Assembly: GCA_964036045.1 (NCBI GenBank)
Contig: OZ038379.1
Coordinates: forward strand, 17,794,001-17,858,000
Origin: Eutreptiella sp. 'Long Island Sound 2002'
Taxonomy: Eukaryota; Protista; Euglenida
Direction of reading: 5' to 3'
DNA length: 64,000 nt
The translations under genes were made by a program, and so were the position numbers. Numbering within the stretch: position 1 is the first letter of the stretch; each line of letters begins with the position of its first letter. The notes under the pieces were generated by a model, which did not search any database, was not told the DNA's origin, and saw only the letters and a program-made list of their open reading frames with translations. Of this stretch, positions 3,614-47,417 are shown in pieces.

Positions 3614-3624
3614 TTCTGCTACCG
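3614..3624 (-). promoter_or_regulatory. Degenerate tRNAi-Met primer-binding site of element 2
   Basis: Minus strand reads CGGTAGCAGAA (9/11 match to the first PBS), at the same position relative to its LTR. Confidence 0.7.
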
Positions 3625-14646: not shown

Positions 14647-14763
14647 CTCTGCCGCTGCATCCCCCGAGCCACCCTCAGCATCCTCCTCCATGGCAGTCTC
14701 CGAATCAGTCGGGCCGGCCGCTGGGTCGTCCTGCTTCTTCTGCCGCTTCTTCGCTGGCGATGC
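14647..14763 (-). CDS. Phase 0-0 exon candidate with NLS-like ASPAKKRQKK and an acidic tract
   Basis: CCCACAG/GCATCG acceptor, GAG/GTAGCC donor, 117 nt open. Confidence 0.5.
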
Positions 14764-14845
14764 CTGTGGGACAACACCAACACCTCCGGGACCCCTTGCA
14801 CTGCTCGAAGGGGGCATCGGGGCCGGTGGACGAGGAGTTGTTGAG

Positions 14846-17800
14846 TAGGTTGTTGAGGCGTCTGCGTTTTCATGTGCACTCCTCGTGTAACTGTTTTTGC
14901 GACCCATGTATGTTGGTAAACTAGGTCACCGCCTCCCCATCATTTGCACCGTGTGCTGCTTGAAGCTATAGCTCAGCGTCAACTATTATAGTTGTTGTCG
15001 TCCCCGCCTTGCGCTTCCGGTTCCGTGCCACGTACCGCACTGGTGCTCCTACTAGGTCACGCAGGTTCCGTGCGGTTTCCCGTGGTGGTCGGGGCTGTGC
15101 AATAAACCTATTTAGCCATAGGGGGGGCGGGGGTTGCTTTGGTGTGGGGTCGGCTAGCTTCTCTCTCAAGGCTTGAACGGCCTGGATTATCTGAAACTGG
15201 AAGAGGCCCAACTCGGCCCGTAGTTTGTGTCTTTATACATCGGATATGAACGGCGAAATGGTGGGCCTGCACGCTCCGATGCCCATCTTGGGGTCATTTT
15301 GAGCCCCAGCCAACACCCATGTTGTGCCCAAATCCGCGTTTTTTGCCACTTGGCACGCACAGGGGGTCTCAAGGCGGTAAAAGGCACGATCTGATATGTG
15401 CACCACTCGTAGCGCATTAGAATTTTTTTCATTTTTTGTAATTGTCTTATAATGTAGGCCAAGTGCAAGGGGTTGTGGTGCGCTGTACGTGAAATTTTTG
15501 GGCAATAGCACTGTCGACAAAAGGGGCCTCAATATATGAAAACATGTTGAACCGGCGAGGATCACATCCTCAATTCTAATTGCATGCACTATTGTGCGTC
15601 GGCATCTTGCATGCGCGCCGCCCGGCAATCAAAGAACGCAAACTGAGAAGTTCGACTCCAAACTATGCGCTGATTAGCATAAATACCGGTTCATTGCTCG
15701 TTGATGCTTCGCAAAAAGGCCCAATGGCCACCATGAAGAACAGTCTCACAACCTTGGTGCTTAGTTTGCACGCACTGTTAGATTTCTCCCATGGCAGTCC
15801 ATGAATTATATCTCTCTTGACAAACGATGACACATCTAAGAAGCAGTTCGTGCCTTGGCAGGATTGGCAGAGATACGAGAATTTTCACAATTAACGAATG
15901 TACAGCGATAGATAGTTGCTTTGGACCACTTTGTGGCAGAATGGGTTGCATGTGTTGTGTTTGGCGTTGTGTGTCCTTCATTGTACCGCTTGTTGTCAAA
16001 CCACTTCGTATACATTTTCCTCTCTCTGCCATAGTCAGCCCAAATGGTGGAGGGCGTTGCTGACCACGAGTGGGAGGAGACAGAGGCCACAATGGTGCAG
16101 GTGGCAGTGCAGCTAAGCGGTCTTCAGAAATCTGTCTTCAGAAAATCATCATCATCGTGACCCTCGGCTGAACGATCAGGAGCATCCTCTTGATCCCCGG
16201 GCTTCTTCTGCTGCTGCAACTTCTTCTCCTCCTCGACCTTCTCCTTCCAATGCTCCTTCAGGAGCTTTTGGTGAATTCGCGGGTCACTACATACGTTTGG
16301 GGTTGCAGTACCGCTAGCATGGTAGCTTGTCTAATGGTAGCATGCATGGTCTTCATTTGTGTCATTGTGGAGGGAGAGAGAGGCGGGGGGGGGGGGGATT
16401 TCGGCATGCAAGTCATGCAACCCCGAGACGGCATGCGTTATGTAGCCATCCAACCCGCATTCGGGCTCCCGAGAAGGCAATTGTTAGGTTGCCCCTCTTG
16501 ATTTTGTCCCCGCTGTAAGTGCTGGGAACCCCCAACAACGTAGGGTTGTTTTGTCAGTCTACCCATGTTTGGGCCCCGGAGACGGCAGGGGTTAAGTCGC
16601 CCTTTGGGCTCATCATCTGCACGTCTTTCAGATTTTTCCAGGAAAGGCACATTGTCCTACACAGTTGTGTGGTGGCTCAAGGCGCTAGCCCTGCACTTTC
16701 CCTCGGCCCTGGTGGTGCTCCGGACCTTGTAATTTGAATGTTGGTGTTGATCTTCCGAGCCATTAATGACACAATCCCATGTTTCATTGGACCATCGCAC
16801 AATTGCTCTGTACCCCCTACTGTAGCTTATAGGACCTTTGAGGCTAGGGCACCCGCTGGTTCCGGCCCCAAATGCGGCCAACGACCTCAATTCCACCTGC
16901 CATGTTGCCCTTTTGATATTCATGGCCTTCCTATTGGCCACTGGGTTTACGCTCCTTGTCCCCCCCCCCCCTCACAAATTGCACTTGTCCGCTTCCTGAA
17001 TCACGAAACAAGCACAACGCAGGAGAGCAAAAAACAAACACAACAGTATGTGAGGACACCGAAGAATGTGGACCAATATGTGGAACAGAATGTTTTTGCA
17101 TTGGTCCACGGCCCGGATTATCGGTTTATTACTTCCCCATTTGTATCCAACAACCATTCAGCTTTCAACAACCATCTAGCCACTGCACGTGTATTCATTT
17201 TCAAACCCCAAATACGCAAACCCAAAAGCCACAAGGAAGAATAGGTCCTACCCAATCCTTCTTGGATATCAAACAGCAGCTTAGCTATTCAGTGCTATCA
17301 CTAGGATTGTGATGATGGATTAACTTTTGAATGACAGAGACTTTTGCTCAATTTTTATGTATGGCACAATACACCAGCACTCTCAATGAATCACAAACCA
17401 CAAGCGACACAAATTCGTTGCCTTTGTGCGCCCTCGAATAGGGCTTCTAAGTTGTTGTTGGCCAGGGGCTCGGTTCAGGTTCAGGTTGGATGCACAGTGA
17501 GCTGCTACAGCGGTCACTGGCAAACTTGCTCCAGGAAAAAACCGTGGCACCCAATGATATTAGGATGCTCCAACTTCAAAAGTGCCTGCGACTTGGCCTT
17601 TGGGCAAACAAGAGGGAGAGGAACAGAAAGAACAAGATGAGCGGAGAACGACAAGGTATAAAGACTGCACGAGGTTTTCATTCAACCTCCCGGGTGTCAA
17701 ATTGAAACGCATTTGATATGCACTCTCACCTTGTTGAATCATTTGCCAGGGTTAATACTCAACCCAACCGTCCAAACTTTTTGGCATCTCTTGCTGCCAA

Positions 17801-19079
17801 TGAGCAACGCGCAGTACCCAATGCACAGTGCTTTGTAGTTTCCCTTGCTATCCTTTAGTTTACCGCTAAACACCTTGGTTGGCGCAAAAAAAAAACAGGC
17901 AATTAGTGCGCCATTCCAGGTTGTATTCTCGGATGCATTCATAAATTGTCAACAAGCTGCCCACTTTGGTGGCAGCCAGAGGAATGGTGGGCACCTTCAG
18001 GGCCTGATACAAAGCGACACCGAACCTCTTAGCACTCACACATCGCACAAACGTACATGTGCACACCCAAGATGCAACTCATACCTCCACTAATGCAATT
18101 GTTCCCTTCTGCCAGTAATCGCAAACTATCTTCTTCAATGCCACTATGGAGGTGCCCCACTTCACCAACCATACTTGGCCATACACTCCGGCACCAAGCT
18201 TCGTAACCACTTCATAGCATGGCTACACGCAAGGTGCAAAGAGTTGCACACAAAGACTTGCGAATGAAATACCCTTGGAGCCCAGGCCAATTCCAAGGCA
18301 AAAGACACATGACTGGAATGACAGGCTGAAAATCCTACCAACACCCTTGCTTCTTCTTTTCTTTCATTTTCACCCCTATCAAGGGCTTTGGCAGGCGTTG
18401 TTGAATCCCCCTGCAACCTCTTGCCCCGTCAACCGCGACTCTTCAACCCCCCTCCCCCGGCCCCACAAACACCTGCAGCCTGAGCCCTGCCCCGCCACCG
18501 CATGGCACGCATACCCTGCTCCAACACAATGGCCCCCTTTTCCGGAAACGCGGAGAGAAGCAGCTGGTGCTTCACCTCCGGACCGAGCGGACCGGGGCCC
18601 CCGACGGACGTCTGCTGGCGGGCGGGGGCGTGGGACACGCCGTCGCTGGGGCGGGGGCGCTTCGCAGGGACGGCGTGGGCGGTCATCGCAGTCCCCGGCC
18701 GCTTGCGAGGCCCAACCGGCGGTTGTGGAGCGGTTGCGGGACGGTTTGGCGGTTGGGCGGAGCAGCCGGCGCGAGAGGCGGTGCCCGTGCCGGACCCATC
18801 GCCCGAGGCGGTGCGGAATGCCGGACCCATGCTGGGCCGGTACCGTGAGGCCGGGCTGTGGGGCGGGGGCATCGCCGGGGCGTCGCGCGCGGCGGATCGT
18901 TGCCGGCTGCGGGGCCCGGAGGCGGCGCCGGGGGTACCGGGGGCAGCGGCCACGGCGGAGGGGCGGGCCACCACCTCGTGCCAACACATGCCGGCGCAGT
19001 AGACCACGCAAGCGGCGTCTTCGGGGAAGAGGGAGCGCGCGACGGACTCCCCGGGGCACTGGACGGTGGGGCGGCTCTG
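14846..19079 (-). repeat. Segment A (4234 bp), the in-context counterpart of the inverted A' copies
   Basis: Its reverse complement matches 28322-32614 and 37870-42163, and the ORF track mirrors it (for example 15778-16092 versus 31368-31682 and 40917-41231). Confidence 0.97.
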
Positions 19080-20033
19080 CACATGCACCGACGCGGGGGC
19101 GTCCTCTGGGGAGGGACCGAGCAGCCCGCACAACCGCTGAAGAAGCGTCTCCCGATTGGGCTCCCCCTCCGCCTCCCCATCTCCCCCGGCCTCCGGCACC
19201 GCCCGAGCGCTGGAGCGAGCGGTCGAAGTGGAGGATGATGATGATGATGATGATGATGAGGAGGAGGAGGAGGAGGAGGAGGAGGAGGGGGACACAGATA
19301 CGGCGTCGTCCGCTGCCTCCTCCTCCGCAGTCAAATCAACGGCCTCCAGGACTTCAGAGCCGCGGGCCTTCCTTGGACTTGCAGGTCTCTTTGTCCGGTC
19401 GCTCACCCCGCTGAGTCCATGCTGTGGCCCCTGTGTACCTGGTTGCTTCGACTTCACAGCCTGGCCGCCTTGATCCGCCCCCGGCTCATCATCAAACAAC
19501 CCCGATGGCACGAATTGGGTGAAGGCACGCTTACGCTTACCTTGACCTTGACCCTTCACCTGATCCTTCATATCGTAGCAATCAGATTTGTTCGTTGCAA
19601 ACGTGGGGATTCCTACAGATGTAAGGGGGTGGGGAGAGGCATACCCAAAAACAAGCTGGAATCCATGCCGTCTGCAACTGCATCTACTCTCATCCACACC
19701 TAAACCCCCACCCCAGGCCACACCATCACCCACACTCGCACCCACACCGACATGTCCAGCGCGGTAATGAGTTGCACCGCAGGTCGGCCACACTAGGCAT
19801 CCACCAGGGACATCATGGACCAGCTGATGCAGATGCCATGCCTCAAGACGACTGCAGACATTCGGCCGAAGTGCAACACCCACAACACCCTGGTAATGCA
19901 TGGTTTGTGGGCACCTTTTCACGGGTACCACATTCACACCCACATCCACACCCACACCCACACCCACAGCGCCAAATCCACACCCACACCCATACCCACA
20001 CCACATCCACAGCCATTCCCAAGCCTGCAACAA
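18429..20033 (-). CDS. Long open frame with a GC-rich, low-complexity Ser/Pro/Ala region, probably an exon of the LIM gene; true boundaries unknown
   Basis: 534-codon open frame with poly-Ser, a basic KRKR cluster and a G/GTATGC donor near 18514. The N-terminal part is microsatellite-derived. It is in frame with the LIM ORF across a single TGA (20037-20039). Confidence 0.5.
   Translation of the reverse strand: MLQAWEWLWMWCGYGCGCGFGAVGVGVGVDVGVNVVPVKRCPQTMHYQGVVGVALRPNVCSRLEAWHLHQLVHDVPGGCLVWPTCGATHYRAGHVGVGASVGDGVAWGGGLGVDESRCSCRRHGFQLVFGYASPHPLTSVGIPTFATNKSDCYDMKDQVKGQGQGKRKRAFTQFVPSGLFDDEPGADQGGQAVKSKQPGTQGPQHGLSGVSDRTKRPASPRKARGSEVLEAVDLTAEEEAADDAVSVSPSSSSSSSSSSSSSSSSSSSTSTARSSARAVPEAGGDGEAEGEPNRETLLQRLCGLLGPSPEDAPASVHVQSRPTVQCPGESVARSLFPEDAACVVYCAGMCWHEVVARPSAVAAAPGTPGAASGPRSRQRSAARDAPAMPPPHSPASRYRPSMGPAFRTASGDGSGTGTASRAGCSAQPPNRPATAPQPPVGPRKRPGTAMTAHAVPAKRPRPSDGVSHAPARQQTSVGGPGPLGPEVKHQLLLSAFPEKGAIVLEQGMRAMRWRGRAQAAGVCGAGGGGLKSRG
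19231..19287 (+). repeat. Compound microsatellite (GAT)n(GAG)n
   Basis: Read directly. It encodes poly-Ser in the minus-strand 534-aa frame. Confidence 0.95.
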
Positions 20034-20393
20034 TGCTCATACCGATCCCATACCAATACCAAAACCCACAAACGCACCAACACCCATGTCCACATCCATG
20101 CCCGCAACCACCGAGGTCACACCCCACTTTCGAACACTGACTTGTTCAAGCTGAATCTGAGTGGATGCTGCTGCTGCTGCTGTTGTGGTGACTCGGAGTG
20201 GCAAAGAGAGGGGCGTCGGGTTCAAAGTTGCTCCTGGAGCACTTAGAATGCCAAAACATGGGGTTTTCACCCATTTGGAGACTGTGATGGCGCATTTAGA
20301 TGCCTCGGAAAACCACAAAAAGCCTTGAAAATGCTCTGAAAATATCCCTTGTGCTATCCCGATACACTCCCTTGCTCCAATACCAGTTGGTCC

Positions 20394-20560
20394 GCAGTCA
20401 TCACAAACGAGACCACCGCGTACACCGTTGTTACGAAATTTGCCGTCCACAAAGGCTGTTCCGCATATGACGCACTTGCAACATGGGAGGTGATAATACT
20501 TGCCAGCCACCTTCACCATGTCCCGAGCCAGCGAGAATTTAAGGCAGACACGACACAACT
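20394..20560 (-). CDS. LIM-domain exon
   Basis: CRVC-x17-H-x2-C-x2-C-x2-C-x19-C-x2-C fits the LIM consensus exactly. It is preceded by the pyrimidine-rich acceptor CTTTCTCATCACAG, and the frame stays open to 20037. Confidence 0.85.
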
Positions 20561-22095
20561 CTGTGATGAGAAAGATACAGTGGAACCCAACACCACTTTT
20601 GTCCCAGTTTTGGACCCCTCAACCTTCCTCTTCTCCATTGATAGTGGCACATGTTCCGCTGTTGCTGGTGCTCATGTGCCCTCGCCAGTTCCTTACACTG
20701 AAAAGCATGAAACCGTGTGGTGATGGCATATATTGCACTGATGCAGCTACTCGTCTTTTCATTACGTTTTGAAGGGGTCTGTAAAAAGTCCAAAAAAATG
20801 GAGGGTTGAACGGTACAAGTGTTTGAGAGGAAAATTTTACATTTGGGGGGGAGAGGGGTCCTCCTAATTCTGCCCCCCCCCCCCCGCGCGGGACAGGGGT
20901 GATAGGTGTGCGTGTACGCGTTTTTTACGGCTAGCTTTTTCATTCCGAAACTTAGTAGAAGAATGTTGTTCTTCTCTTCTAAGGTGGTACAAGTTTTCTT
21001 GTATCAAATTTTGGACCTTAGCAGAAAGAAAACCCACCCACGGAAGAAAAACTTAGTACCAAAAATGTTTTCTTCCTAACTTTTAAAAGTTAGCAAACAT
21101 TTTCTTCCAATTCTTGGGGCATAAGAATAACAGGGAAAATCATCCTCCGGGTCCATGTACTGTAATATTTGCATATGCCTGAATGTGGTGCGCCAAGCAA
21201 CAAACGTAGCCTCTTACTTTATCTTCCGCCAATTGCTCTGCAGCTCCTTGCTTCCTTACCTCATATTCATGGCTCATAGGGATGTTGGATGTGTTTCAAT
21301 GGCTCTTCGTCTGCAGCAACAAGCCCCTGACCCTTAGAGCCCTTTTCTTTACGTTTAGACTAGAGAAACAAGTAGTGGTCCGTGGAGTGCCTGTCTCAAC
21401 ACCCCCTAAAAGGGTTCTGGCCAGATCTGATCTTTCCAACCACACACAAACGAATTAACTTTCACACTTTCACCAACTCAACAACCTCCAACAACCACCA
21501 TCGAAAACTACAATCAACAACGACAACACCCCCCCCTCCCGCCCAGAGGGACCGTCAATATGTAGGCTGCCCTTGTGGTGGGTCTGGGCATGCTGCACCG
21601 CTGTTTTCTGTCTGCTTGCTAGCAGCAGCTGCCCATAGGTCACTGCCTTGCCTCTAGAGAGGGGGCGGGGGGCAGCTGGGGCATTGCCCCCATTTCAACA
21701 CCATGCATTCTATGGTGCAACAATGTGAATGTGAATGGCCGGCATGCAAATGGCCCATCCCCTGTTCCTTGACAGCACGTGCACAATCTACTGCCGTTTG
21801 CTGTGGTGCCGGTCACAAGGGTTTGTGTGGGAGGAGGGGCAGGAGTTGGTACCGCTCCTCAGTCGCATCCCACCCCACCCCCCACCCCACCCAACCCCTG
21901 GGGGAGGGGGCCGATTCCCCTTCCCGCGGAAAGGCATAGGGTGTGCACACCTGGCACTCGTTTGCCCATGAAAGGAAGTGCCCTGTTGCCCTTCTTCCTG
22001 TCCTGTGTTTTTGTGGAGCTTGTCGAGGCTTCCATTAAGGTGGTAGTTACCAGCAGTGCGTACGCCATTGGAAAGTGTGACGTCAGAAAATGTGC

Positions 22096-22100
<5 letters not shown>

Positions 22101-22170
<70 letters not shown>
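22101..22170 (+). repeat. (CT)35 microsatellite
   Basis: Read directly. Confidence 0.98.
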
Positions 22171-22173
<3 letters not shown>

Positions 22174-22197
22174 GGAGTGTTAGTGCGCGAGGCGCGC

Positions 22198-22880
22198 ATG
22201 GGGCAATTTTTTGGGCTACTAGTGCTTCCTACCCCTATTTTACCGAGATGTCCGTTATGTCACGTGCACGATGGCACAACAGTGCACCATCGCCTAATGC
22301 ACCGCTTACGGTGGAAGGTGGCCTTCCGCACCATGTGGATCTCTACATGGGGCCCATGGTAGGATTATATGACCGAGTGGTGGTCACGCGCAATGACAGA
22401 AGATCTTCACCACGCGTCCTGTCTTCGTATCCCGGACCCGCTTTGTCGCAACTTGCCCCCCGGGTGCGGCGCAGAGTTTTGAGAGTGCGTGGCATGGCAC
22501 CAATACCATGCTCTCCATGGTGTGTGCCAACTACGGCGACAACTTACCATGCCCCCACGCGAGTCGCACTCACTGGCACACCAGTCCACATCGGTGCCAG
22601 CATGGTATACCAAGCTAAGACCCACCGACTCTGTACTCTGGGACTAGGTGTGATTTGTCCGCAGGGCACATAAGTGGCTGCAGCCCAGGGAACACGATCA
22701 AGAGTCCCTTTGCCTCCATCGGCGGACGTCACGCACCCTGCAGCAGTGCCGCCTATCACACCCACCTGTGGGCCGCGTGTTACCTTGACCACCGTGCCCC
22801 CAATGCCTCGCTGCAACATGAAGCGCGGTTGGCGGCATGGTACTTGGTTGAGCCCTTGCACCAATGACGCCACCATGATT
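22198..22880 (+). pseudogene. Probable 3' fragment of a non-LTR retrotransposon ORF2 (C-terminal Cys/His knuckle)
   Basis: CPLCHVHDGTTVHHRLMH resembles the LINE C-terminal C-x2-C...H-x4-C knuckle and is followed by a Trp-rich stretch. Stops and frameshifts are present, and no RT motif is seen. Confidence 0.45.
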
Positions 22881-25482
22881 TGATGCACATTACACTCACC
22901 TCACGAGTTGATCTTGGCAACGGCCTGCTTGGTAGTAGGCATGCGTGCCTCACAACCACGTGACGAGCGATGGCTTGGCTCCGGCCGCTCCAAACAGCAC
23001 GCGAACTCCACCTCGGTCAAGCCGAACGGTTTTCTCTCATGTACTACCTGTGGATAGCTGAACGGAGCCCACCGGTGGAAGCACTTCCTCTCCTTCTGTG
23101 ACAAACTGGCTGTACAGCCCGCCCACTGTGCGTTAGACACTTACCGACATGCCCAAGTCACTGAAACCGCACTACAACACGTGAGGGGTTTTACCAGATT
23201 ACCATCTGTCGGTGGAAAACTTAAAAAAAGGAACACATAGAGACGCAGCATCGTACAATCGCATACACAGCACTGTGTCTGGAACATCGACAATGGTACG
23301 AACAAGCAAAACACTACACCATGCAACATCATGCAAACTCAAAAACGTCCCTCCTCTCGCATGAGATGTTCACGCGTCTTTGCGCAGACACAACACTGCT
23401 CCTCACAGACCACAGTCGAAAAGCCCGTTACGCCTTGCTTGAACAAGGAGGTCTCATTCAATTGGCGCAAGACACACCAAAAGCATACCGACTAAAGACA
23501 GCCCTCTACTGGGACGTATCTCGAACGGGCAGGACAAGCAGTTTTCTTCGCACGAAAACGGACACGGGAGCGGTGGGACCCCACCTGGCGGGAAGTCCCG
23601 CTGCAGCCACTACCTAAACGACAAAAAGGGCACCGGGATCCAAACGAATGGGGAATGCCCCTAATATGACGACACCAACACCAACGGAAAACCATGGGGG
23701 CTCAACCATGGGGGAAGCCATGGCTCAGCCCGTATGTTCACCCTGGCACTGCCAATATCTGTACTTATCGGTGAACTTTGCCCTTCGCGGCACATGGCAC
23801 ATTCCGTACTGGCCTCTTTGAATAAAAAAAAAGCTGCCCTTCTTTGGGGCGTTGTGACCCGTAGGTTGGCGCACTTACGGGACAAGTGGTGAAAATTTTT
23901 TGTCACCATTCCCTTGTAAGCCCCTGCCCCATGCCCCTTCCAATCACCGACGTTTGCTAAGGCAGCAGTTTGAGTTAATAGTGGCCACAAAGCTTATGCA
24001 TTTTTTGCACATGTCTCCTTTTGTGTCATAGAGGTACCAATGCAGGGAGGAACCAATGCAATTTTCGGAAAGTTGCAAACACCCCACTTTACCCACGACA
24101 TCATCTTCCGTTGTCCCACCTTAGGGTCCAACCTCTCTGCAATAGACCCGCCAAGCTGCTCAACACTATTTCGAACCTCATTGCTAGCTACGTGTCCCAG
24201 ATCCTTCGACCTAGCCTCCGATGCTTTGCTCATGCATCATTCTCGGTGCCGCTGAAACATGTTGCAACACAGGCATGCTTGGGCCGAATTCGTGTTGTTT
24301 TTGACCATTCTCCCCTCTGTTTGAGCCTGTCTTCCGTGGTACCGGCATGTTTTATGCATCACACTACTATCGGAGACGGCTCGACTTTAGGCTCATATGG
24401 GTTCCTTAGGTGGCAATGGCCAAACTGCTGTTGTCCAACCACTGGGGGCCTCTTGGCAAATGGAAACAATTTAGTAATTTGGTTTCATCGACACAAGGGT
24501 CATCTTCATGGAGTCAATATGCATCGGTGCGTATCGGAAGCCGGCTTTTAACATCACAAAACCCAGCGACATCGCACATGTACGTTCTCCAACTCCATCT
24601 TCTTCGGGAGCGGCGGCGCTGCGGGCAGACTGGCCGGCGTCGTAAAGGGGATGACAGAAGCGGCAGGGCCATGAGGGGGGCTGCTGAGGCCTCATGCCGA
24701 AGATGAGGGCTTCGGGCAATGGATGGCCCCAGTGGATGGCGTTGACGTTGCTGCAGTCCACTGTACATGCTACACAAGAAAGAAAAGACGTTTCGGGGAG
24801 ATTCTTTCAAGAATGCAGCTTTCTTTCATCTTTTTTGCGCAAAATACCCCTCCGCCGCCAACCCTTGTTATTTAGTTATTCTAAAGACGCCATGACGTGT
24901 CCCCATGCATAGGCTGCTCAAATAAGCACGGGAAAGACTACTTTAAAGGCTTTCAAAGAACATCAAGCACAATGCATAGCTCTCTATTTGCTGTCTCAAG
25001 GTCGACTTTGGATTTTTTCCGTTGACGCTCCGTGGAAGTTTCAGATGACTCATTGCGACTTCTTTTGCTGCAACAAGGAGAGCCTCCCATGTGCACGGCA
25101 GCGGGACCAAACGTACACGTATTGTGGTTGTACATTGTCCTCGTCCATGCTTCTATCCATTGGACCGAAGAGGTCAAAGTTTGGATAAAGTTGGTGTAAA
25201 TGTGTGTGGTGGTGACCAAACTCGCTTCAAACTATGTATGTGTGTGTGTATGCATGTCACATGCAAATTCTAAAAAAAAGCATCGAATGCCAAACCAGCT
25301 AATGTGATAGTCTATGGATGTGTGGGTATTCTATTGCCTTCAACAAGGCATCTCGAAGAGAGAGGAGAGATGAGACGAGAACACAAGGGGAGTGTTCTCT
25401 TGGGTGCTATTATTGCCGTGGCTGCGCATTGTGGCTAAATTGGTGGTTTCTGCACAACAACTGAGAAATAAATCAATCGCAG

Positions 25483-28156: not shown

Positions 28157-28321
28157 GCTTGGTCCCTTTGTCGATGCCTTCTGGGAGACAGAGCAGCATG
28201 AGAGTACCAACCATTGGTCAATTACATTTCGGACAGCGCCTGCGCAAGAGACCCTAAAAAAGTCTTGGACAAGCCCAGTCCGAGCATAGGACACCAATTG
28301 ACAAATAGAAGTCAGGTAAGA

Positions 28322-31300: not shown

Positions 31301-32614
31301 CACGATGATGATGATTTTCTGAAGACAGATTTCTGAAGACCGCTTAGCTGCACTGCCACCTGCACCATTGTGGCCTCTGTCTCCTCCCACTCGTGGTCAG
31401 CAACGCCCTCCACCATTTGGGCTGACTATGGCAGAGAGAGGAAAATGTATACGAAGTGGTTTGACAACAAGCGGTACAGTGAAGGACACACAACGCCAAA
31501 CACAACACGTGCAACCCATTCTGCCACAAAGTGGTCCAAAGCAACTATCTATCGCTGTACATTCGTTAATTGTGAAAATTCTCGTATCTCTGCCAATCCT
31601 GCCAAGGCACGAACTGCTTCTTAGATGTGTCATCGTTTGTCAAGAGAGATATAATTCATGGACTGCCATGGGAGAATTCTAACAGTGCGTGCAAACTAAG
31701 CACCAAGGTTGTGAGACTGTTCTTCATGGTGGCCATTGGGCCTTTTTGCGAAGCATCAACGAGCAATGAACCGGTATTTATGCTAATCAGCGCATAGTTT
31801 GGAGTCGAACTTCTCAGTTTGCGTTCTTTGATTGCCGGGCGGCGCGCATGCAAGATGCCGACACACAATAGTGCATGCAATTAGAATTGAGGATGTGATC
31901 CTCGCAGGTTCAACATGTTTTCATATATTGAGGCCCCTTTTGTCGACAGTGCTATTGCCCAAAAATTTCACGTGCAGCGCACCACAACCCCTTGCACTTG
32001 GCCTACATTATAAGACAATTACGAAAAATGAAAAAAATTCTAATGCGCTACGAGTGGTGCACATATCAGATCGTGCCTTTTACCGCCTTGAGACCCCCTG
32101 TGGGTGCCAAGTGGCAAAAAACGCGGATTTGGGCACAACATGGGTGTTGTCTGGGGCTCAAAATGACCCCAAGATGGGCATCGGAGCGTGCAGGCCCACC
32201 ATTTCGCCGTTCATATCCGATGTATAAAGACACAAACTACGGGCCGAGCTGGGCCTCTTCCAGTTTCAGATAATCCAGGCCGTTCAAGCCTTGAGAGAGA
32301 AGCTAGCCGACCCCACACCAAAGCAACACCCGCCCCCCCTATGGCTAAATAGGTTTATTGCACAGCCCCGACCACCACGGGAAACCGCACGGAACCTGCG
32401 TGACCTAGTAGGAGCACCAGTGCGGTACGTGGCACGGAACCGGAAGCGCAAGGCGGGGACGACAACAACTATAATAGTTGACGCTGAGCTATGGCTTCAA
32501 GCAGCACACGGTGCAAATGATGGGGAGGCGGTGACCTAGTTTACCAACATACATGGGTCGCAAAAACAGTTACACGAGGAGTGCACATGAAAACGCAGAC
32601 GCCTCAACAACCTA
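28322..32614 (+). repeat. A' copy 1 (inverted copy of segment A)
   Basis: Reverse complement of 14846-19079, with an extra 57 bp at 28885-28941. Confidence 0.97.
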
Positions 32615-37867: not shown

Positions 37868-38577
37868 GACAGGGCCGCCCCACCGCCCAGTGCCCCGGGG
37901 AGTCCGTCGCGCGCTCCCTTCTCCCCGAAGACGCCGCTTGCCTGGTCTACTGCGCCGGCATGTGTTGGCACGAGGTGGTGGTCCGCCCCTCCGCCGTGGC
38001 CGCTGCCCCCGGTACCCCCGGCGCCGCCTCCGGGCCCCGCAGCCGGCAACGATCCGCCGCGCGCGACGCCCCGGCGATGCCCCCGCCCCACAGCCCGGCC
38101 TCACGGTACCGGCCCAGCATGGGTCCGGCATTCCGCACCGCCTCGGGCGATGGGTCCGGCACGGGCACCGCCTCTCGCACCGGCTGCTCCGCCCAACCGC
38201 CCAACAGTCCCGCAACCGCTCCACAACCGCCGGTTGGGCCTCGCAAGCGGCCGGGGACTGCGATGACCGCCCACGCCGTCCCTGCGAAGCGCCCCCGCCC
38301 CAGCGACGGCGTGTCCCACGCCCCCGCCCGCCAGCAGACGTCCGTCGGGGGCCCCGGTCCGCTCGGTCCGGAGGTGAAGCACCAGCTGCTTCTCTCCGCG
38401 TTTCCGGAAAAGGGGGCCATTGTGTTGGAGCAGCTGCGACAGGGGCATGTGACGGGGGCTGTGTACATCTTCAAGACGCGGCTTCTTGCGGGTATGCGTG
38501 CCATGCGGTGGCGGGGCAGGGCTCAGGCTGCAGGTGTTTGTGGGGCCGGGGGAGGGGGGTTGAAGAGTCGCGGTTGA
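37762..38577 (+). CDS. Chimeric ORF spanning the B/A' junction (271 aa)
   Basis: B-derived ...PSPSIGHQLTNRSQ is joined in frame to A-derived RPTAQCPGESVARS... The equivalent in copy 1 has a TAG at 28352-28354. Confidence 0.4.
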   Translation: MVNYISDSACARDPKKVLNKPSPSIGHQLTNRSQVRQGRPTAQCPGESVARSLLPEDAACLVYCAGMCWHEVVVRPSAVAAAPGTPGAASGPRSRQRSAARDAPAMPPPHSPASRYRPSMGPAFRTASGDGSGTGTASRTGCSAQPPNSPATAPQPPVGPRKRPGTAMTAHAVPAKRPRPSDGVSHAPARQQTSVGGPGPLGPEVKHQLLLSAFPEKGAIVLEQLRQGHVTGAVYIFKTRLLAGMRAMRWRGRAQAAGVCGAGGGGLKSRG

Positions 38578-41500
38578 CGGGGCAAGAGGTTGCAGGGGGA
38601 TTCAACAACGCCTGCCAAAGCCCTTGATCGGGGTGAAAATGAAAGAAAAGAAGAAGCAAGGGTGTTGGTAGGATTTTCAGCCTGTCATTCCAGTCATGTG
38701 TGTTTTGCCTTGGAATTGGCCTGGGCTCCAAGGGTATTTCATTCGCAAGTCTTTGTGTGCGACTCTTTGCACCTTGCGTGTAGCCATGCTATGAAGTGGT
38801 TACGAAGCTTGGTGCCGGAGTGTATGGCCAAGTATGGTTGGTGAAGTGGGGTACCTCCATAGTGGCATTGAAGAAGATAGTTTGCGATTACTGGCAGAAG
38901 GGAACAATTGCATTAGTGGAGGTATGAGTTGCATCTTGGGTGTGCACATGTACGTTTGTGCAATGTGTGAGTGCTAAGAGGTTCGGTGTCGCTTTGTATC
39001 AGGCCCTGAAGGTGCCCACCATTCCTCTGGCTGCCACCAAAGTGGGCAGCTTGTTGACAATTTATGAATGCATCCGAGAATACAACCTGGAATGGCGCAC
39101 TAATTGCCTGTTCTTTTTTTTTGCGCCAACCAAGGTGTTTAGCTGTAACCTAAAGGATAGCAAGGGAAACTACAAAGCACTGTGCATTGGGTACTGCGCG
39201 TTGCTCATTGGCAGCAAGAGATGCCAAAAAGTTTGGACGGTTGGGTTGAGTATTAACCCTGGCAAATGATTCAACAAGGTGAGAGTGCATATCAAATGCG
39301 TTTCAATTTGACACCCGGGAGGTTGATTGAAAACCTCGTGCAGTCTTTATACCTTGTCGTTCTCCGCTCATCTTGTTCTTTCTGTTCCTCTCCCTCTTGT
39401 TTGCCCAAAGGCCAAGGCGCAGGCACTTTTGAAGTTGGAGCATCCTAATATCATTGGGTGCCACGGTTTTTTCCTGGAGCAAGTTTGCCAGTGACCGCTG
39501 TAGCAGCTCACTGTGCATCCAACCTGAACCTGAACCGAGCCCCTGGCCAACAACAACTTAGAAGCCCTATTCGAGGGCGCACAAAGGCAACGAATTTGTG
39601 TCGCTTGTGGTTTGTGATTCATTGAGAGTGCTGGTGTATTGTGCCATACATAAAAATTGAGCAAAAGTCTCTGTCATTCAAAAGTTAATCCATCATCACA
39701 ATCCTAGTGATAGCACTGAATAGCTAAGCTGCTGTTTGATATCCAAGAAGGATTGGGTAGGACCTATTCTTCCTTGTGGCTTTTGGGTTTGCGTATTTGG
39801 GGTGTGAAAATGAATACACGTGCAGTGGCTAGATGGTTGTTGAAAGCTGAGTGGTTGTTGGATACAAATGGGGAAGTAATAAACCGATAATCCGGGCCGT
39901 GGACCAATGCAAAAACATCCTGTTCCACATATTGGTCCACATTCTTCGGTGTCCTCACATACTGTTGTGTTTGTTTTTTGCTCTCCTGCGTTGTGCTTGT
40001 TTCGTGATTCAGGAAGCGGACAAGTGCAATTTGTGAGGGGGGGGGGACAAGGAGCGTAAACCCAGTGGCCAATAGGAAGGCCATGAATATCAAAAGGGCA
40101 ACATGGCAGGTGGAATTGAGGTCGTTGGCCGCATTTGGGGCCGGAACCAGCGGGTGCCCTAGCCTCAAAGGTCCTATAAGCTACAGTAGGGGGTACAGAG
40201 CAATTGTGCGATGGTCCAATGAAACATGGGATTGTGTCATTAATGGCTCGGAAGATCAACACCAACATTCAAATTACAAGGTCCGGAGCACCACCAGGGC
40301 CGAGGGAAAGTGCAGGGCTAGCGCCTTGAGCCACCACACAACTGTGTAGGACAATGTGCCTTTCCTGGAAAAATCTGAAAGACGTGCAGATGATGAGCCC
40401 AAAGGGCGACTTAACCCCTGCCGTCTCCGGGGCCCAAACATGGGTAGACTGACAAAACAACCCTACGTTGTTGGGGGTTCCCAGCACTTACAGCGGGGAC
40501 AAAATCAAGAGGGGCAACCTAACAATTGCCTTCTCGGGAGCCCGAATGCGGGTTGGATGGCTACATAACGCATGCCGTCTCGGGGTTGCATGACTTGCAT
40601 GCCGAAATCCCCCCCCCCCGCCCCGCCTCTCTCTCCCTCCACAATGACACAAATGAAGACCATGCATGCTACCATTAGACAAGCTACCATGCTAGCGGTA
40701 CTGCAACCCCAAACGTATGTAGTGACCCGCGAATTCACCAAAAGCTCCTGAAGGAGCATTGGAAGGAGAAGGTCGAGGAGGAGCAGAAGTTGCAGCAGCA
40801 GAAGAAGCCCGGGGATCAAGAGGATGCTCCTGATCGTTCAGCAGAGGGTCACGATGATGATGATTTTCTGAAGACAGATTTCTGAAGACCGCTTAGCTGC
40901 ACTGCCACCTGCACCATTGTGGCCTCTGTCTCCTCCCACTCGTGGTCAGCAACGCCCTCCACCATTTGGGCTGACTATGGCAGAGAGAGGAAAATGTATA
41001 CGAAGTGGTTTGACAACAAGCGGTACAGTGAAGGACACACAACGCCAAACACAACACATGCAACCCATTCTGCCACAAAGTGGTCCAAAGCAACTATCTA
41101 TCGCTGTACATTCGTTAATTGTGAAAATTCTCGTATCTCTGCCAATCCTGCCAAGGCACAAACTGCTTCTTAGATGTGTCATCGTTTGTCAAGAGAGATA
41201 TAATTCATGGACTGCCATGGGAGAATTCTAACAGTGCGTGCAAACTAAGCACCAAGGTTGTGAGACTGTTCTTCATGGTGGCCATTGGGCCTTTTTGCGA
41301 AGCATCAACGAGCAATGAACCGGTATTTATGCTAATCAGCGCATAGTTTGGAGTCGAACTTCTCAGTTTGCGTTCTTTGATTGCCGGGCGGCGCGCATGC
41401 AAGATGCCGACACACAATAGTGCATGCAATTAGAATTGAGGATGTGATCCTCGCAGGTTCAACATGTTTTCATATATTGAGGCCCCTTTTGTCGACAGTG

Positions 41501-42163
41501 CTATTGCCCAAAAATTTCACGTGCAGCGCACCACAACCCCTTGCACTTGGCCTACATTATAAGACAATTACGAAAAATGAAAAAAATTCTAATGCGCTAC
41601 GAGTGGTGCACATATCAGATCGTGCCTTTTACCGCCTTGAGACCCCCTGTGGGTGCCAAGTGGCAAAAAACGCGGATTTGGGCACAACATGGGTGTTGTC
41701 TGGGGCTCAAAATGACCCCAAGATGGGCATCGGAGCGTGCAGGCCCACCATTTCGCCGTTCATATCCGATGTATAAAGACACAAACTACGGGCCGAGTTG
41801 GCCCTCTTCCAGTTTCAGATAATCCAGGCCGTTCAAGCCTTGAGAGAGAAGCTAGCCGACCCCACACCAAAGCAACCCCCGCCCCCCCTATGGCTAAATA
41901 GGTTTATTGCACAGCCCCGACCACCACGGGAAACCGCACGGAACCTGCGTGACCTAGTAGGAGCACCAGTGCGGTACGTGGCACGGAACCGGAAGCGCAA
42001 GGCGGGGACGACAACAACTATAATAGTTGACGCTGAGCTATGGCTTCAAGCAGCACACGGTGCAAATGATGGGGAGGCGGTGACCTAGTTTACCAACATA
42101 CATGGGTCGCAAAAACAGTTACACGAGGAGTGCACATGAAAACGCAGACGCCTCAACAACCTA
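37870..42163 (+). repeat. A' copy 2
   Basis: Direct repeat of 28322-32614 with the same two junction sequences. Confidence 0.97.
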
Positions 42164-45100
42164 GCCCACCGGTGGAAGCACTTCCTCTCCTTCTGTGACA
42201 AACTGGCTGTACAGCCCGCCCACTGTGCGTTAGACACTTACCGACATGCCCAAATCACTGAAACCGCACTACAACACGTGAGGGGTTTTACCAGATTACC
42301 ATCTGTCGGTGGAAAACTTAAAAAAAGGAACACATAGAGACGCAGCATCGTACAATCGCATACACAGCACTGTGTCTGGAACATCGACAATGGTACGAAC
42401 AAGCAAAACACTACACCATGCAACATCATGCAAACTCAAAAACGTCCCTCCTCTCGCATGAGATGTTCACGCGTCTTTGCGCAGACACAACACTGCTCCT
42501 CACAGACCACAGTCGAAAAGCCCGTTACGCCTTGCTTGAACAAGGAGGTCTCATTCAATTGGCGCAAGACACACCAAAAGCATACCGACTAAAGACAGCC
42601 CTCTACTGGGACGTATCTCGAACGGGCAGGACAAGCAGTTTTCTTCGCACGAAAACGGACACGGGAGCGGTGGGACCCCACCTTGCGGGAAGTCCCGCTG
42701 CAGCCACTACCTAAACGACAAAAAGGGCACCGGGATCCAAACCAATGGGGAATGCCCCTAATATGACGACACCAACACCAACGGAAAACCATGGGGGCTC
42801 AACCATGGGGGAAGCCATGGCTCAGCCCGTATGTTCACCCTGGCACTGCCAATATCTGTACTTATCGGTGAACTTTGCCCTTCGCGGCACATGGCACATT
42901 CCGTACTGGCCTCTTTGAATAAAAAAAAAAGCTGCCCTTCTTTGGGGCGTTGTGACCCGTAGGTTGGCGCACTTACGGGACAAGTGGTGAAAATTTTTTG
43001 TCACCATTCCCTTGTAAGCCCCTGCCCCATGCCCCTTCCAATCACCGACGTTTGCTAAGGCAGCAGTTTGAGTTAATAGTGGCCACAAAGCTTATGCATT
43101 TTTTGCACATGTCTCCTTTTGTGTCATAGAGGTACCAATGCAGGGAGGAACCAATGCAATTTTCGGAAAGTTGCAAACACCCCACTTTACCCACGACATC
43201 ATCTTCCGTTGTCCCACCTTAGGGTCCAACCTCTCTGCAATAGACCCGCCAAGCTGCTCAACACTATTTCGAACCTCATTGCTAGCTACGTGTCCCAGAT
43301 CCTTCGACCTAGCCTCCGATGCTTTGCTCATGCATCAATCTCGGTGCCGCTGAAACATGTTGCAACACAGGCATGCTTGGGCCGAATTCGTGTTGTTTTT
43401 GACCATTCTCCCCTCTGTTTGAGCCTGTCTTCCGTGGTACCGACATGTTTTATGCATCACACTACTATCGGAGACGGCTCGACTTTAGGCTCATATGGGT
43501 TCCTTAGGTGGCAATGGCCAAACTGCTGTTGTCCAACCACTGGGGGCCTCTTGGCAAATGGAAACAATTTAGTAATTTGGTTTCATCGACACAAGGGTCA
43601 TCTTCATGGAGTCAATATGCATCGGTGCGTATCGGAAGCCGGCTTTTAACATCACAAAACCCAGCGGCATCGCACATGTACGTTCTCCAACTCCATCTTC
43701 TTCGGGAGCGGCGGCGCTGCGGGCAGACTGGCCGGCGTCGTAAAGGGGATGACAGAAGCGGCAGGGCCATGAGGGGGGCTGCTGAGGCCTCATGCCGAAG
43801 ATGAGGGCTTCGGGCAATGGATGGCCCCAGTGGATGGCGTTGACGTTGCTGCAGTCCACTGTACATGCTACACAAGAAAGAAAAGACGTTTCGGGGAGAT
43901 TCTTTCAAGAATGCAGCTTTCTTTCATCTTTTTTGCGCAAAATACCCCTCCGCCGCCAACCCTTGTTATTTAGTTATTCTAAAGACGCCATGACGTGTCC
44001 CCATGCATAGGCTGCTCAAATAAGCACGGGAAAGACTACTTTAAAGGCTTTCAAAGAACATCAAGCACAATGCATAGCTCTCTATTTGCTGTCTCAAGGT
44101 CGACTTTGGATTTTTTCCGTTGACGCTCCGTGGAAGTTTCAGATGACTCATTGCGACTCCTTTTGCTGCAACAAGGAGAGCCTCCCATGTGCACGGCAGC
44201 GGGACCAAACGTACACGTATTGTGGTTGTACATTGTCCTCGTCCATGCTTCTATCCATTGGACCGAAGAGGTCAAAGTTTGGATAAAGTTGGTGTTAATG
44301 TGTGTGGTGGTGACCAAACTCGCTTCAAACTATGTATGTGTGTGTGTATGCATGTCACATGCAAATTCCAAAAAAAAGCATCGAATGCCAAACCAGCTAA
44401 TGTGATAGTCTATGGATGTGTGGGTATTCTATTGCCTTCAACAAGGCATCTCGAAGAGAGAGGAGAGATGAGACGAGAACACAAGGGGAGTGTTCTCTTG
44501 GGTGCTATTATTGCCGTGGCTGCGCATTGTGGCTAAATTGGTGGTTTCTGCACAACAACTGAGAAATAAATCAATCGCAGAACATTTTATCAACATGGGG
44601 TATAAAAACACTCCATGGCATCGTCTAAGACTTCACTCCCCAGGTATGACTGATGATAGAGCCCGAGCCATTGAGTACAAGTCAGAAATCCCATACCAAC
44701 GACTCAGCACGATCTACAAAGATGATGATGGGTGGTATGCGGTGCAAGTGGACCCCACTGAAGTGGACAAGTTCAGAGTAGAGGTGTGTGTTCGCTGTTT
44801 TTGCTTGCTCACAAGTCCACGTGCCACGCAACAGGGACGCTTAGCACATCGCACCGCGGCATCAAATTGTGATAGAATACCACCGCATTGGTGCACACTG
44901 CACCGCAGGATTGTGTCCATTTTGTATGGGCTGGCGCAGTATGTTGTTTCCTTCTATCCCTAGGAGGCAGCCCTCTGTAATTCGATCTAGTGAGGCATTC
45001 CGGAGGGAGGTAGCAAAATGAGATGCTCTGTTTCATAGTGGTAAGTTTTATCCACCATGGCGTGTTGTCTGATTGGGCCTCTATTCACCCCACGGTGCAA

Positions 45101-47417
45101 GCCGCAAAATTTAAGCCAACATAACAACCGCCTGATTGCGGTGCTGCACTAGCTAAATCCACTAAGGAGAAAATTGCTGCTCGCAATGATCTTTTTAGGC
45201 GTCAGCCAGAAGGCAAGAGATGGCTTTTCCAAATTGCCTCATCATGCTCATCCCAAAATCCCATTCTCATTTTTTCTCCTAATTTGGGGTCCGCGTTAGC
45301 TCCAGGCCATCTCAGTATGACTTTTGGGTCCAGCCCGTTGAGGCCCAAACTGCCCCCGCTCCCCACCCCGGAGTTAAACGGCCGCCCCTCCCATGCCACC
45401 TCCAAAGGACCAACATTGGTCAGCTCATCTATAGGAATGTTGCCCCTCCACAGGGAGCGTCAGTTCCGCTGACTTGCTGCGGTTAGATTAGGAAGGCTGG
45501 GGATCGGAACCAAAAGAAGGGAGGGGAGCCTTTAGGGGGCACCACAACATAAACCAATAGGCATATATGAAGAGCAGGGAGTGTGGCATCGTAAGGTGTG
45601 GTGTGGCAAATGCTAGTGTGTGTGGATCAGGGCGCAGAAAAGCGGCACTCCTTCGGCCAAACCTTGAATGCTGTGGGTTGTGCAAGGTGTGTGTGTTTGT
45701 CACTTTTTGCCCTAACCCTAACCCTAGGGCAAGAAAAACAATATGATCGCACAATATGATATTAGCAGCAGCAATTCGAACCGCCGCAGATGTGTGAATC
45801 ATTGTTGTGCCCCCTCCCAAGGACAGTCCTGGGTAATGTGAAACCACATAGGTACCGTGCGTGGTGGGATGGATAAGTGCAGGGCTCTCAAAAGCCGGAG
45901 TCAAAACGAAACAGAACATAACAGAACAGAACAAACACAACAGAACACAAACGGAAAAGAACAGAGCAGAACAAAACAGAACAGAACAAAACACAACTAA
46001 ACACAATAGAACAGAACTAAACAAAACTAAACAGAAAGAAACACAACACAGCAGAACAGAACAGAACAAATCAGATAAGAACAAAACCGAACCAAACCGA
46101 ACCACACCGAACCGAACCGAACAGAACAGAATAGAACGGAACAGAACAGAACAGAACAAAACAGAACAGAACAGAGGTCCATTTTTATGGACCACCTACC
46201 CCAAATGTGTCGCTTGGAGGTTCTTATGTTTCACATTGATCAACAATTTGCGGCAGCAGATGGCAAAAAACAGGATGCACCATTCTTGCGAAAGCCAAAG
46301 TGAAGGAGGCGGTTGTTACACAGGTTCTCATTGAAGATTGGACATTTCATAACGGCCATGTGTGAATGTGCAACGATTTAATTTTGGTTCCGGAGTGCAG
46401 CTGACGAGTGGGGGCAGCATGCATGTTGTCACGTTCTTGCTTCCTACGAAATACCATTTTTAGTTGTGCTGTGTGGGGATTGCATGACGTACTAGGCATC
46501 CTCTTGAAGAGTGCACTTCCCAAACACTTGCACACTTGCCGTCAAGAATTGCACCCACTCAACTTAAACATGCGTTGGGAGCTGGGTCGGGCTTGGGTTT
46601 GATTTGTGCGTTAAACAAGGTTAGTCTTCTGCGGGCTCCATTCACTCTTATTCAGGTTAACAAGCAGCCCGATGCGAAAACGGCCGATCATCCTTGTCCA
46701 CAATGTGGCAAACATGTCCGGAGCCGCTGGGTGAAGAATGAGGTGCATTGTTGGCAGCATGCGCCACAGCAAACACAAACAAGGAAGCGTGAACGCAAAG
46801 AAGATGATCAGGAGGATGATGCCAAATCCCCAAAAGTATTGTCTCGTTGCAATCAGGCATTGCTCGCTTTTTAGCAATTGAAACAAGGCTATTTCGTTGC
46901 ATCACTTCATTGCAGCATAGAAACGCAAGCTTTATGTTCTCCTCACCTATGAAGCCGTTCGACCGTAACGATTTGGAGCACTGGGGGGCACAAGCACCAA
47001 ATCATTTGGTAGTGATGGCGAAGTCCGACACAATGGCTGTGGTAGGGCTGGAGGTGTATTTCGACAGCCCTCCAAAGGGCAAGGTGGCAGGACTTGACCC
47101 AGTTGAGAATGTTCTTGCAAAGGTCTGCTTCATTAAGTATAAAGGACAACTAGCAAGTATAGGTGCGAGAAAAGCGATGGCCGCATTTGCTGTTTCCGAT
47201 AATGCCTATGCAATTCATGCAATTCAAAGTTGCAATCAAAGTGGCGTTTCTTGAGCTTGGTCCCTTTGTCGATGCCTTCTGGGAGACAGAGCAGCATGAG
47301 AGTACCAACCATTGGTCAATTACATTTCGGACAGCGCCTGCGCAAGGGACCCTAAAAAAGTCTTGGACAAGCCCAGTCCGAGCATAGGACACCAATTGAC
47401 AAATAGAAGTCAGGTAA
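42163..47417 (+). repeat. Segment B copy 3, running into unique sequence
   Basis: Matches B up to ...GAAGTCAGGTAA, then continues CTTGTTATC instead of GACAG. Confidence 0.97.

Follow-up and report, generated by a model that had tools for sequence, protein, structure and literature searches.

How did a single inverted module come to lie beside a set of direct repeats? The window (the whole stretch of DNA that was analysed, 64,000 nt, without Ns) was compared with itself by self-BLAST and a repeat search, which place modules A and B1 on its left and then GA, A' and B twice, ending at 47417, with a period of 9548–9550 nt (Table 1). These module coordinates bear out an earlier reading of the letters made without database searches (the sequence-only reading), and its rough count of 1% difference between B copies is in line with the 0.74–0.97% divergence between copies in pairwise comparison. 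That reading explained the layout by a template-switch loop in which replication passed from the B end back through a native A and on to the start of B, creating two novel junctions, J1 and J2, with unequal crossover adding a further unit. Patterns detected here point to another history: very probably, a non-coding unit of 9.55 kb (A'B) was triplicated head to tail, and the array was later altered by two nested non-homologous inversions, the inner called inv2 and the outer inv1.

Table 1. Features of the array and its surroundings, in window coordinates.
Feature	Position	Strand	Remarks
16.6-kb tandem duplication, part of second copy in window	1-15594	+	window -17636..-1048 = -1054..15594, 99.5%
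X, left flank	675-8606	+	colinear with C2:14313351-14321279, 98.3%
inv1 left breakpoint X|Y	8606/8607		about 41 nt of paralogues absent here
Y	8607-13518	+	segment apparently flipped by inv1
TE3 half at start of Y	8607 to at least 9300
TE2 other half, end of Y	from at least 13200 to 13518
Filler	13519-14845	+	left junction of inv2
A	14846-19079	-	probably A' module of first unit, now inverted
TE1 split, 5' half	14846-15234		inside inverted A
S	19080-23065	-	probable original left flank of array, flipped with A
LIM-domain ORF	20037-20558	-	in S; orphan
TE2 half within S	22242-23065
inv2 right breakpoint S|B	23065/23066		separates TE2 from 13518 partner, TE1 from 14846 partner
B1	23066-28319	+	self-BLAST; start is 3' half of split TE1
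TE1 split, 3' half	23066-23832		start of B1; ends in poly(A) of element
J1a GA filler	28320-28321	+	tandem-duplication junction, B end to A' start
A'1 (second unit)	28322-32614	+	self-BLAST
TE1 fragment, intact	32226-33380	+	1155 nt, 5'-truncated, poly(A) tail, spans J2
B2	32614-37867	+	self-BLAST
J1b GA filler	37868-37869	+	junction sequence
A'2 (third unit)	37870-42163	+	self-BLAST
TE1 fragment, second copy	41775-42929
B3	42163-47417	+	self-BLAST
R, probable original right flank of B	47418-47889	+	ends at inv1 right breakpoint
Z start, other TE3 half	47890-48077	+	at least 15 dispersed copies have it next to Y 8607

The two junctions within the array differ in what they reveal. J1 (...GTCAGGTAA + GA + CAGAGCC..., with the core …GGTAA GA CAGAGCC…) is the same at 28319/28322 and 37867/37870, and J2 reads ...CAACAACCTA|GCCCA... 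at 32614 and 42163, sequences and positions both as previously read. J1 was said to occur twice; searched genome-wide it occurs five times, twice in the window and three times at C2:14.33-14.344 Mb, and is confined to these two related arrays. J2 at 32614 falls within one copy of a retroposon, TE1, that has poly(A) at its 3' end. The TE1 family (about 1.7 kb, with a poly(A) tail) gave 1776 candidate matches in a genome search, and dispersed copies have 78–90% identity. TE1 copies on C5, C15, C17, C8, C10 and C22 align across window positions 32226-32730 without any break at J2 and, elsewhere, with no more than a few short gaps. Since dispersed copies are uninterrupted at J2, the order A'-B is ancestral, and J1 is the sole junction made by the duplication, J2 not being new. 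The array has units joined by one identical junction, a unit interior that was ancestrally contiguous, with the TE1 fragment spanning the A'|B join, and outer ends that run into the original flanks of the unit. A scan of the 5' region of dispersed TE1 copies for reverse transcriptase gave no match, and a spliced-leader match in L026 proved not to be part of the TE1 copy present there.

The template-switch loop is compatible with the layout inside the window, and the 2-nt filler at J1 and 1-nt overlap at J2 do resemble junctions made by template switching. It would, however, have to place J2 by chance in the middle of an element that other copies read straight through, and base-perfect rejoining of two halves in this way is not credible; an origin of the dispersed TE1 copies from this locus after the event is excluded by their divergence and by the roughly 1,800 candidate matches. 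Moreover, the supposedly native ends of A and B, described as continuing seamlessly into flanking DNA, each cut a dispersed repeat in two, and an uninverted paralogous array carries A'-B units only. The continuity of TE1 across J2 refutes the loop; J2 is older than the array and the inverted A probably the first unit's own module.

The cut repeats also suggest what happened instead of the loop. Flipping 14846-23065 re-pairs the halves of a repeat at both of its ends, TE1 (14846|23066) and TE2 (13518|23065). The end of S and the reverse complement of Y up to 13518 abut within -4 to +1 nt in at least 10 dispersed TE2 copies, one at C12:13556431-13557262(+)|13557263-13557578(-) and others on C24, C11, C19, C1 and C4. 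Farther out, X is followed in all paralogues by about 41 nt and then by the reverse complements of R and B, an order kept in seven paralogues; R runs on directly from B in every older paralogue; and at least 15 dispersed TE3 copies have the reverse complement of Z 47886/47890-48077 directly adjoining Y 8606/8607-9300. Support from TE2 and TE3 consists of abutting coordinates and strands from the genome search. On this sequence evidence inv2 is an 8.2-kb inversion (14846-23065) splitting TE1 and TE2, and inv1 a 39.3-kb inversion (8607-47889) that encloses it and splits a third dispersed repeat, TE3, as indicated also by the adjacency of X and R' in paralogues. When both are reversed in silico, the long matches to the uninverted paralogue (X, R and the array) are all +/+ and contiguous. 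The count of only two novel junctions given earlier accordingly needs revision: J2 is to be removed, and five further rearrangement junctions, taken there for seamless DNA, lie in the window (8606/8607, 13518/13519, 14845/14846, 23065/23066 and 47889/47890).

Homology at the breakpoints did not exceed a shuffled null. Within 40 nt on either side, no inverted match was longer than 5 nt, compared with a shuffled mean of about 6 nt, and on this basis non-allelic homologous recombination between inverted repeats, or a role of short inverted repeats at the breakpoints, was rejected. Captured DNA is present at the junctions, namely GA at J1 and, at the left junction of inv2, a 1.3-kb patch (13516-14837, 99% identical to C8:11605140-11606462(-)) followed by eight nucleotides (14838-14845, TTGTTGAG) that are a direct copy of 14850-14857. 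The patch was probably copied from C8 into the window, to judge only by match ends that coincide with the breakpoints. Such patches and fillers are compatible with replicative repair or with end joining that captured DNA. In this respect the sequence-only reading was partly right, as non-homologous and partly templated junctions do exist at this locus, although not where it proposed them.

The uninverted paralogous array shares a chromosome with the window, at a distance of 3.5 Mb (C2:14.32-14.354 Mb). There C2:14321788-14353470 contains three copies of the unit and a further one with an internal deletion, together with three occurrences of J1 and no inversion; X/R adjoins it at one end and A-S at the other. 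A and S are contiguous in the window and also at this second locus, there with a 1.4-kb deletion. Because the second locus is without distal S, Y and Z, the order S-Y'-Z is taken from the split repeats only. Both loci have three A and three B modules, which indicates that the inverted A is not an additional copy. The two A' copies were said to share differences from A; these come to two substitutions and a deletion private to A, of a 56/57-nt stretch at 18516 that is present in A', and A matches A'1 at four informative sites. Copies group by locus and not by position in the array, in a nearly star-like tree, so that three units may have preceded the segmental duplication or each locus may have expanded from two. 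Among 169 singleton substitutions between copies, 94 were transitions and 75 transversions, with 28 at CpG, a spectrum on which RIP-like or other biased mutation was rejected.

An alternative explanation could be that the array is real and that misplaced or mis-oriented contigs, or uncollapsed haplotypes, produced the second locus or at least one of the two inversions. Each of the junctions S|B and R|Z was found only once, as an artefact would predict, and the divergence of 1–1.5% between loci could be allelic if the genome is heterozygous or polyploid. This would not account for scars at the junctions (the loss of 41 nt, the 1.3-kb foreign patch, the 8-nt local copy) in a window free of Ns, nor for further differences between the loci, comprising the internally deleted unit, the 1.4-kb deletion and a 7.4-kb duplication. 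In addition, the X|Y and Y|filler|A junctions both lie within the 16.6-kb duplicated segment on the left and so were each found in two copies, at 99.5% identity, which a single faulty join in the assembly would not produce. We judge an artefact unlikely; the locus is a real, well-resolved and ordinary complex segmental duplication.

A second alternative is that the 9.55-kb unit, or B-A'-B, is a mobile or rolling-circle element, whether giant and LTR-like, Helitron-like or a reintegrated circle. The single junction type J1 with its constant period could be read in this way, older partial paralogues do exist at 87–93% identity on C11, C22, C17 and two other C2 sites, and the sequence by itself is compatible with a circular intermediate. 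Against it, J1 occurs only in the two related arrays, and the older paralogues have X and R beside them as well, which marks them as segmental duplications of a larger region and not as insertions of the unit. Whole units were not found at unrelated sites, other matches being sub-fragments (repeats) or older segmental copies sharing flanks; dispersed B-A'-B copies with target-site duplications, which the sequence-only reading had named as one finding that would overturn it, were likewise not found, and no target-site duplication was seen at the array ends. That reading had also seen no transposon machinery. In agreement, a Pfam screen at 8600-28320, covering the 112 ORFs with 75 codons or more, returned no transposon or viral domain (none for reverse transcriptase, integrase, transposase or helicase), only LIM and low-complexity matches. 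A mobile or circular origin is therefore highly improbable. A search for relatives of the LIM ORF returned only the ORF itself, none were found for a GC-rich ORF of 534 aa at 18429-20033(-), and nothing was recognised in ORF 27749-28156; Pfam on the flanks and Rfam on the window gave no match. As far as the sequence can tell, the region is gene-poor and the unit non-coding, with no recognisable gene besides the orphan LIM ORF.

The duplications at the locus are layered in age (76–99.5% identity), and the triplication with later inversions probably unfolded as follows, the event order and the mechanism (end joining or replicative repair) being inferred. Written in the same direction as the uninverted paralogue, the ancestral single copy would have been X-41nt-R'-B'-A-S-Y'-Z. 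Tandem duplication of B'A would create J1, in which GA links the B end to the right end of A, as its one new junction. A third copy would follow, most simply through unequal crossover, the part of the earlier proposal for tandem amplification that stays plausible. The copy 3.5 Mb away would then stem from a segmental duplication spanning 60 kb or more. At the window locus inv1 would flip R' through Y' with a loss of about 41 nt, and inv2 would turn A-S back and capture the C8-copied patch and the 8-nt local copy; the two may have occurred in either order or as one four-break event. Finally, the 16.6-kb tandem duplication would have copied the left part.

This has two implications. First is that the locus needs no exotic template-switch loop, as duplication followed by inversion explains the inverted module. 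Secondly, it provides a worked example: with three repeats that were cut and a paralogue that kept its orientation, a complex segmental duplication could be resolved to the base. It is possible, although doubtful, that the locus reflects a lineage-specific habit whereby this nuclear genome gains in-place non-homologous inversions of 0.2–40 kb much faster than other eukaryotes. Such a habit, sometimes leaving templated patches, would point to an unusual pathway of double-strand-break or replication-restart repair, and, if such inversions were common genome-wide, would bear on the evolution of a very large, repeat-rich genome and on the reliability of its gene models. In its favor are at least five orientation switches among the older unit paralogues, including one 432-nt flip that is real given its presence in two of them, and an in-place flip of about 180 nt in one TE2 copy. 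Against it, no in-place flip occurred among the best 40 TE1-family copies, a sample biased to intact copies, and the region was chosen for being rearranged. Our search found no literature on inversions or segmental duplications in Euglena.

Template-switch rearrangements (DUP-TRP/INV-DUP, FoSTeS/MMBIR) are known from human genomic-disorder loci, and in DUP-TRP/INV-DUP an additional copy lies inverted between two new junctions. The present locus is similar in having an inverted module between direct repeats, and short fillers and a long templated insertion at junctions. It differs in that the inverted A is not an added copy (three A to three B), that the flanking junctions are not both novel, J2 being ancestral, and that the inversion is balanced. 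A parallel may also be drawn with tandem segmental duplications (CNV arrays), which expand by unequal crossover in clusters of segmental duplications such as primate low-copy-repeat hubs. As in those arrays, units are of kilobase scale with one founding junction, and copy number varies between paralogous loci; as in those hubs, duplications of layered ages and inversions occur together. The low-copy repeats of 22q11.2 (PMC13103302) serve as our comparison for such hubs. Unlike them, the window has inversions that are not mediated by inverted low-copy repeats, in DNA without a recognisable gene but for the LIM ORF. Split transposable elements, finally, are classic evidence for balanced non-homologous inversions in the comparative genomics of Drosophila and primates. 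There, as here, breakpoints interrupt dispersed repeats whose halves re-pair on reversal, with small deletions or duplications, whereas the present locus combines two nested inversions around a tandem array and has at one junction 1.3 kb from another chromosome.

Repeat finding and self-BLAST of the window, which contains 0 Ns and is C2:17794001-17858000 of a 2.28-Gb assembly (sampled DNA 50–57% G+C, CpG observed/expected about 0.65, unlike a vertebrate genome), confirmed the module coordinates of the sequence-only reading, and its junction sequences match the window. The array repeats are real and far above chance, with pairwise substitution differences of 0.80–0.97% among A copies and 0.74–0.97% among B copies, an ordinary substitution spectrum between unit copies, and 266 nt of degenerate (AACAG)n in each of the three B copies (26812-27077, 36360-36625 and 45910-46175). 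That reading had also proposed that a replication template switch copied A backwards between copies of B, creating two novel junctions, J1 (B end, GA, A' start) and J2 (A' to B); this central mechanism is refuted. Searching the whole genome with the two modules showed the reverse complement (rc) of A 1-389 adjoining B 1-767 on many other chromosomes, and nine such loci align to 32226-33380 across 32614, several wholly gap-free. When copies from C5, C15 and C17 were aligned with both J2 sites, all read ...CAACAACCTAGCCCACCGG..., and the supposedly native ends of A and B each matched one half only. The sequence involved is a dispersed repeat, TE1, of about 1.7 kb, with 1,776 candidate matches and a 3' end of AATAAAAAAAAA; the copy in the array is 5'-truncated at 1,155 nt, and none of the 40 best TE1 copies has an internal inversion. 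Because TE1 copies run continuously over 32614, J2 is not novel, A'-B contiguity is ancestral and the repeated unit is A'B, of 9.55 kb. J1, with a 2-nt filler and no microhomology, is the sole junction made by duplication.

Array modules, dispersed-repeat copies and paralogues (unprefixed positions refer to the window)
Feature	Coordinates	Remark
A	14846-19079	
S	19080-23065	spacer, single-copy
B1	23066-28319	GA directly after
A'1	28322-32614	reverse complement of A
B2	32614-37867	GA directly after
A'2	37870-42163	
B3	42163-47417	
TE2 copy	C12:13556431-13557262(+), 13557263-13557578(-)	abutting matches
TE2 copy	C24:29414411-29414698(+), 29414695-29415522(-)	abutting matches
TE2 copy	C11:27901080-27901924, 27901921-27902233	abutting matches
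Further TE2 copies	C19, C1, C4	abutting halves
TE3 copy	C14:53293036-53293223(-), 53293224-53293911(+)	
TE3 copy	C14:56052703-56053398, 56053394-56053579	
TE3 copy	C4:39964208-39964913, 39964916-39965121	
TE3 copy	C1:2474257-2474443, 2474447-2475121	
Paralogues with B, R, ~41 nt, rc(X)	locus 2 (twice); 20 kb upstream of window; C2:122.3 Mb; C2:13.13 Mb; C11:31.18 Mb; C17:25.27 Mb	
In-place inversions in older paralogues	A'688..1+B1..2262; B2263-2456; B2552-3834; B4565-4996	B2552-3834 in C11

The outer ends of A and B, taken in the earlier reading as continuing into native flanks, are both rearranged, each breaking dispersed repeats. The final 824 nt of S (22242-23065) are part of a second repeat, TE2, in which, in at least 10 copies elsewhere, the S end is followed by rc(window ...13518), the two matches abutting within -4 to +1 nt as judged by coordinates and strands. 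Reversing 14846-23065 (the inner inversion, inv2) thus re-pairs TE1 (14846 with 23066) and TE2 (23065 with 13518). A filler occupies the interval between 13518 and 14846: by match coordinates, 13516-14837 is 99% identical to C8:11605140-11606462, the homology stopping at 13516/14837 although the query extended further 5', and the final 8 nt (TTGTTGAG) repeat 14850-14857. A TE2 copy at C24:1595867-1596700, whose flanks are colinear but whose middle ~180 nt (query 936-1116) match in reverse, looks on match coordinates like a small in-place inversion at an unrelated locus.

An outer inversion (inv1) encloses the inner one. In every other paralogue the B end is followed by R (the right flank of B, ~0.47 kb), ~41 nt and then rc(X ...8606), X being the leftmost segment, whereas the window joins X to Y (8607...) and R to Z (47890...). 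A third dispersed repeat, TE3, is split between the starts of Y and Z: judged by match coordinates, rc(Z 47886/47890-48077) abuts Y 8606/8607-9300 in at least 15 of its copies. Paralogue order and the split TE3 thus indicate that 8607-47889 (39.3 kb) was inverted with loss of ~41 nt.

An uninverted counterpart (locus 2) was found on C2 itself, where a genome-wide search located three additional occurrences of J1 at 14321788-14353470. Read in reverse it is S(part)'-A'-B-[A' 4234..2764 + B 3747..5254]-A'-B-A'-B-R-X', i.e. three full units and one with an internal 6.5-kb deletion joined by 5 nt, with X and R as one flank and A-S as the opposite one. Where A meets S, locus 2 (C2:14321788-14354556) has a 1.4-kb deletion (window 19061-20439). 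After in-silico reversal of inv2 (filler dropped) and inv1, matches to locus 2 are all +/+: X 675-8606 with 14313351-14321279, then directly a 21.1-kb match with 14321318-14342396. The region common to both loci continues upstream for ~16 kb at 98.5%, and with the array this makes the window array (locus 1) and locus 2 the two copies of one segmental duplication that spans 60 kb or more.

Informative sites cluster units by locus, three in A and three in B splitting locus 1 from locus 2; only one site each in A and B pairs units across loci, and most differences are singletons. At least two units, hence one J1, would be older than the segmental duplication; the third may be older too, or each locus may have separately expanded or homogenised. 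Nor does A stand apart as the source of the A' copies, as had been claimed: it has four sites in common with A'1 and three with all locus-1 copies, making it an ordinary array member. A stretch in both A' copies (28886-28941 and 38434-38489) is missing from A at 18516, and since every locus-2 copy has it the loss is a deletion private to A, of 57 nt counting a 1-nt overlap. It removes 19 codons and leaves a long GC-rich ORF over the A|S border (18429-20033(-)) in frame, possibly by chance, this ORF having no relatives found. A 16.6-kb tandem duplication (-17636..-1048 matching -1054..15594 at 99.5% identity, 7-nt overlap at its junction) ends within A (A 1-749) and so places a third, incomplete copy of A 16.6 kb upstream of the one in the window; because it includes the joins X|Y and Y|filler|A, both inversions predate it and these two joins are seen twice.

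Non-allelic homologous recombination could be an alternative origin of the inversions but was rejected because inverted repeats are absent at the breakpoints; neither inverted nor direct homology exceeded shuffled expectation at those of inv1 or inv2. The scars (41-nt loss, 1-nt duplication, 1.3-kb foreign patch, 8-nt local copy) suggest double-strand-break end joining or replicative repair, and the four breaks may have been a single event. Several in-place inversions, their breakpoints abutting within 0–36 nt, distinguish the unit from its older paralogues (C11:31.18 Mb, C22:28.64 Mb, C2:122.32 Mb and C2:13.13 Mb), which are 87–94% identical to it. The 432-nt flip of B4565-4996 is common to both C2 paralogues and is therefore real. 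These small inversions, tallied among paralogues of one region rather than as a genome-wide excess, are the only less ordinary aspect of the locus.

In content the unit is a repeat mosaic that includes TE1. Its 16973-18382 (A 2128-3537; 1.4 kb) is 82% identical to arrays of ~5.25-kb spacing on C22 (24.38-24.40 and 26.18-26.20 Mb) and C182. With its B2 and B3 copies, 27487-27882 (B 4422-4817; 396 nt) is 98–99% identical to 1,789-bp satellite units at C2:6196065-6207194, a near-identity that would imply recent exchange between array and satellite. A Pfam scan of 8600-28320, which has 112 stop-to-stop ORFs with 75 or more codons, recognised one LIM domain and otherwise low-complexity matches, with no reverse transcriptase, integrase or transposase; a mobile element was rejected on the tests for one. 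The LIM ORF, 20037-20558(-) in S and mostly deleted at locus 2, has a complete zinc-finger pattern (E=3e-5) and a 160-aa gene product on record, and matched only itself in a word search among relatives of 0.55–1.75 times its length. A second protein-like ORF, in B, was not recognised, the flanks have no Pfam matches and the window no Rfam matches. Near the right edge, 62399-63107 recurs beyond the window at 72759-73467 as a 709-nt direct repeat (99.7%, 10.4 kb apart); the repeats at 1385-1894 and 3835-4356 are related to it at 77–84%. Genome-wide there are 4,728 occurrences of the 26-nt Euglena spliced-leader sequence, dispersed and on both strands (reversed control 0), in keeping with a Euglena genome; they suggest copies of SL-RNA genes or pseudogenes, or else numerous retroposed transcripts with an SL cap.

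Interest of the locus is modest, its structure being otherwise ordinary. It is not a template-switch inverted triplication, there being no additional inverted copy and J2 being ancestral. Rather, it is a tandem segmental duplication within a duplication hub, later struck by balanced non-homologous inversions; the locus not only works like a tandem segmental duplication but is one.
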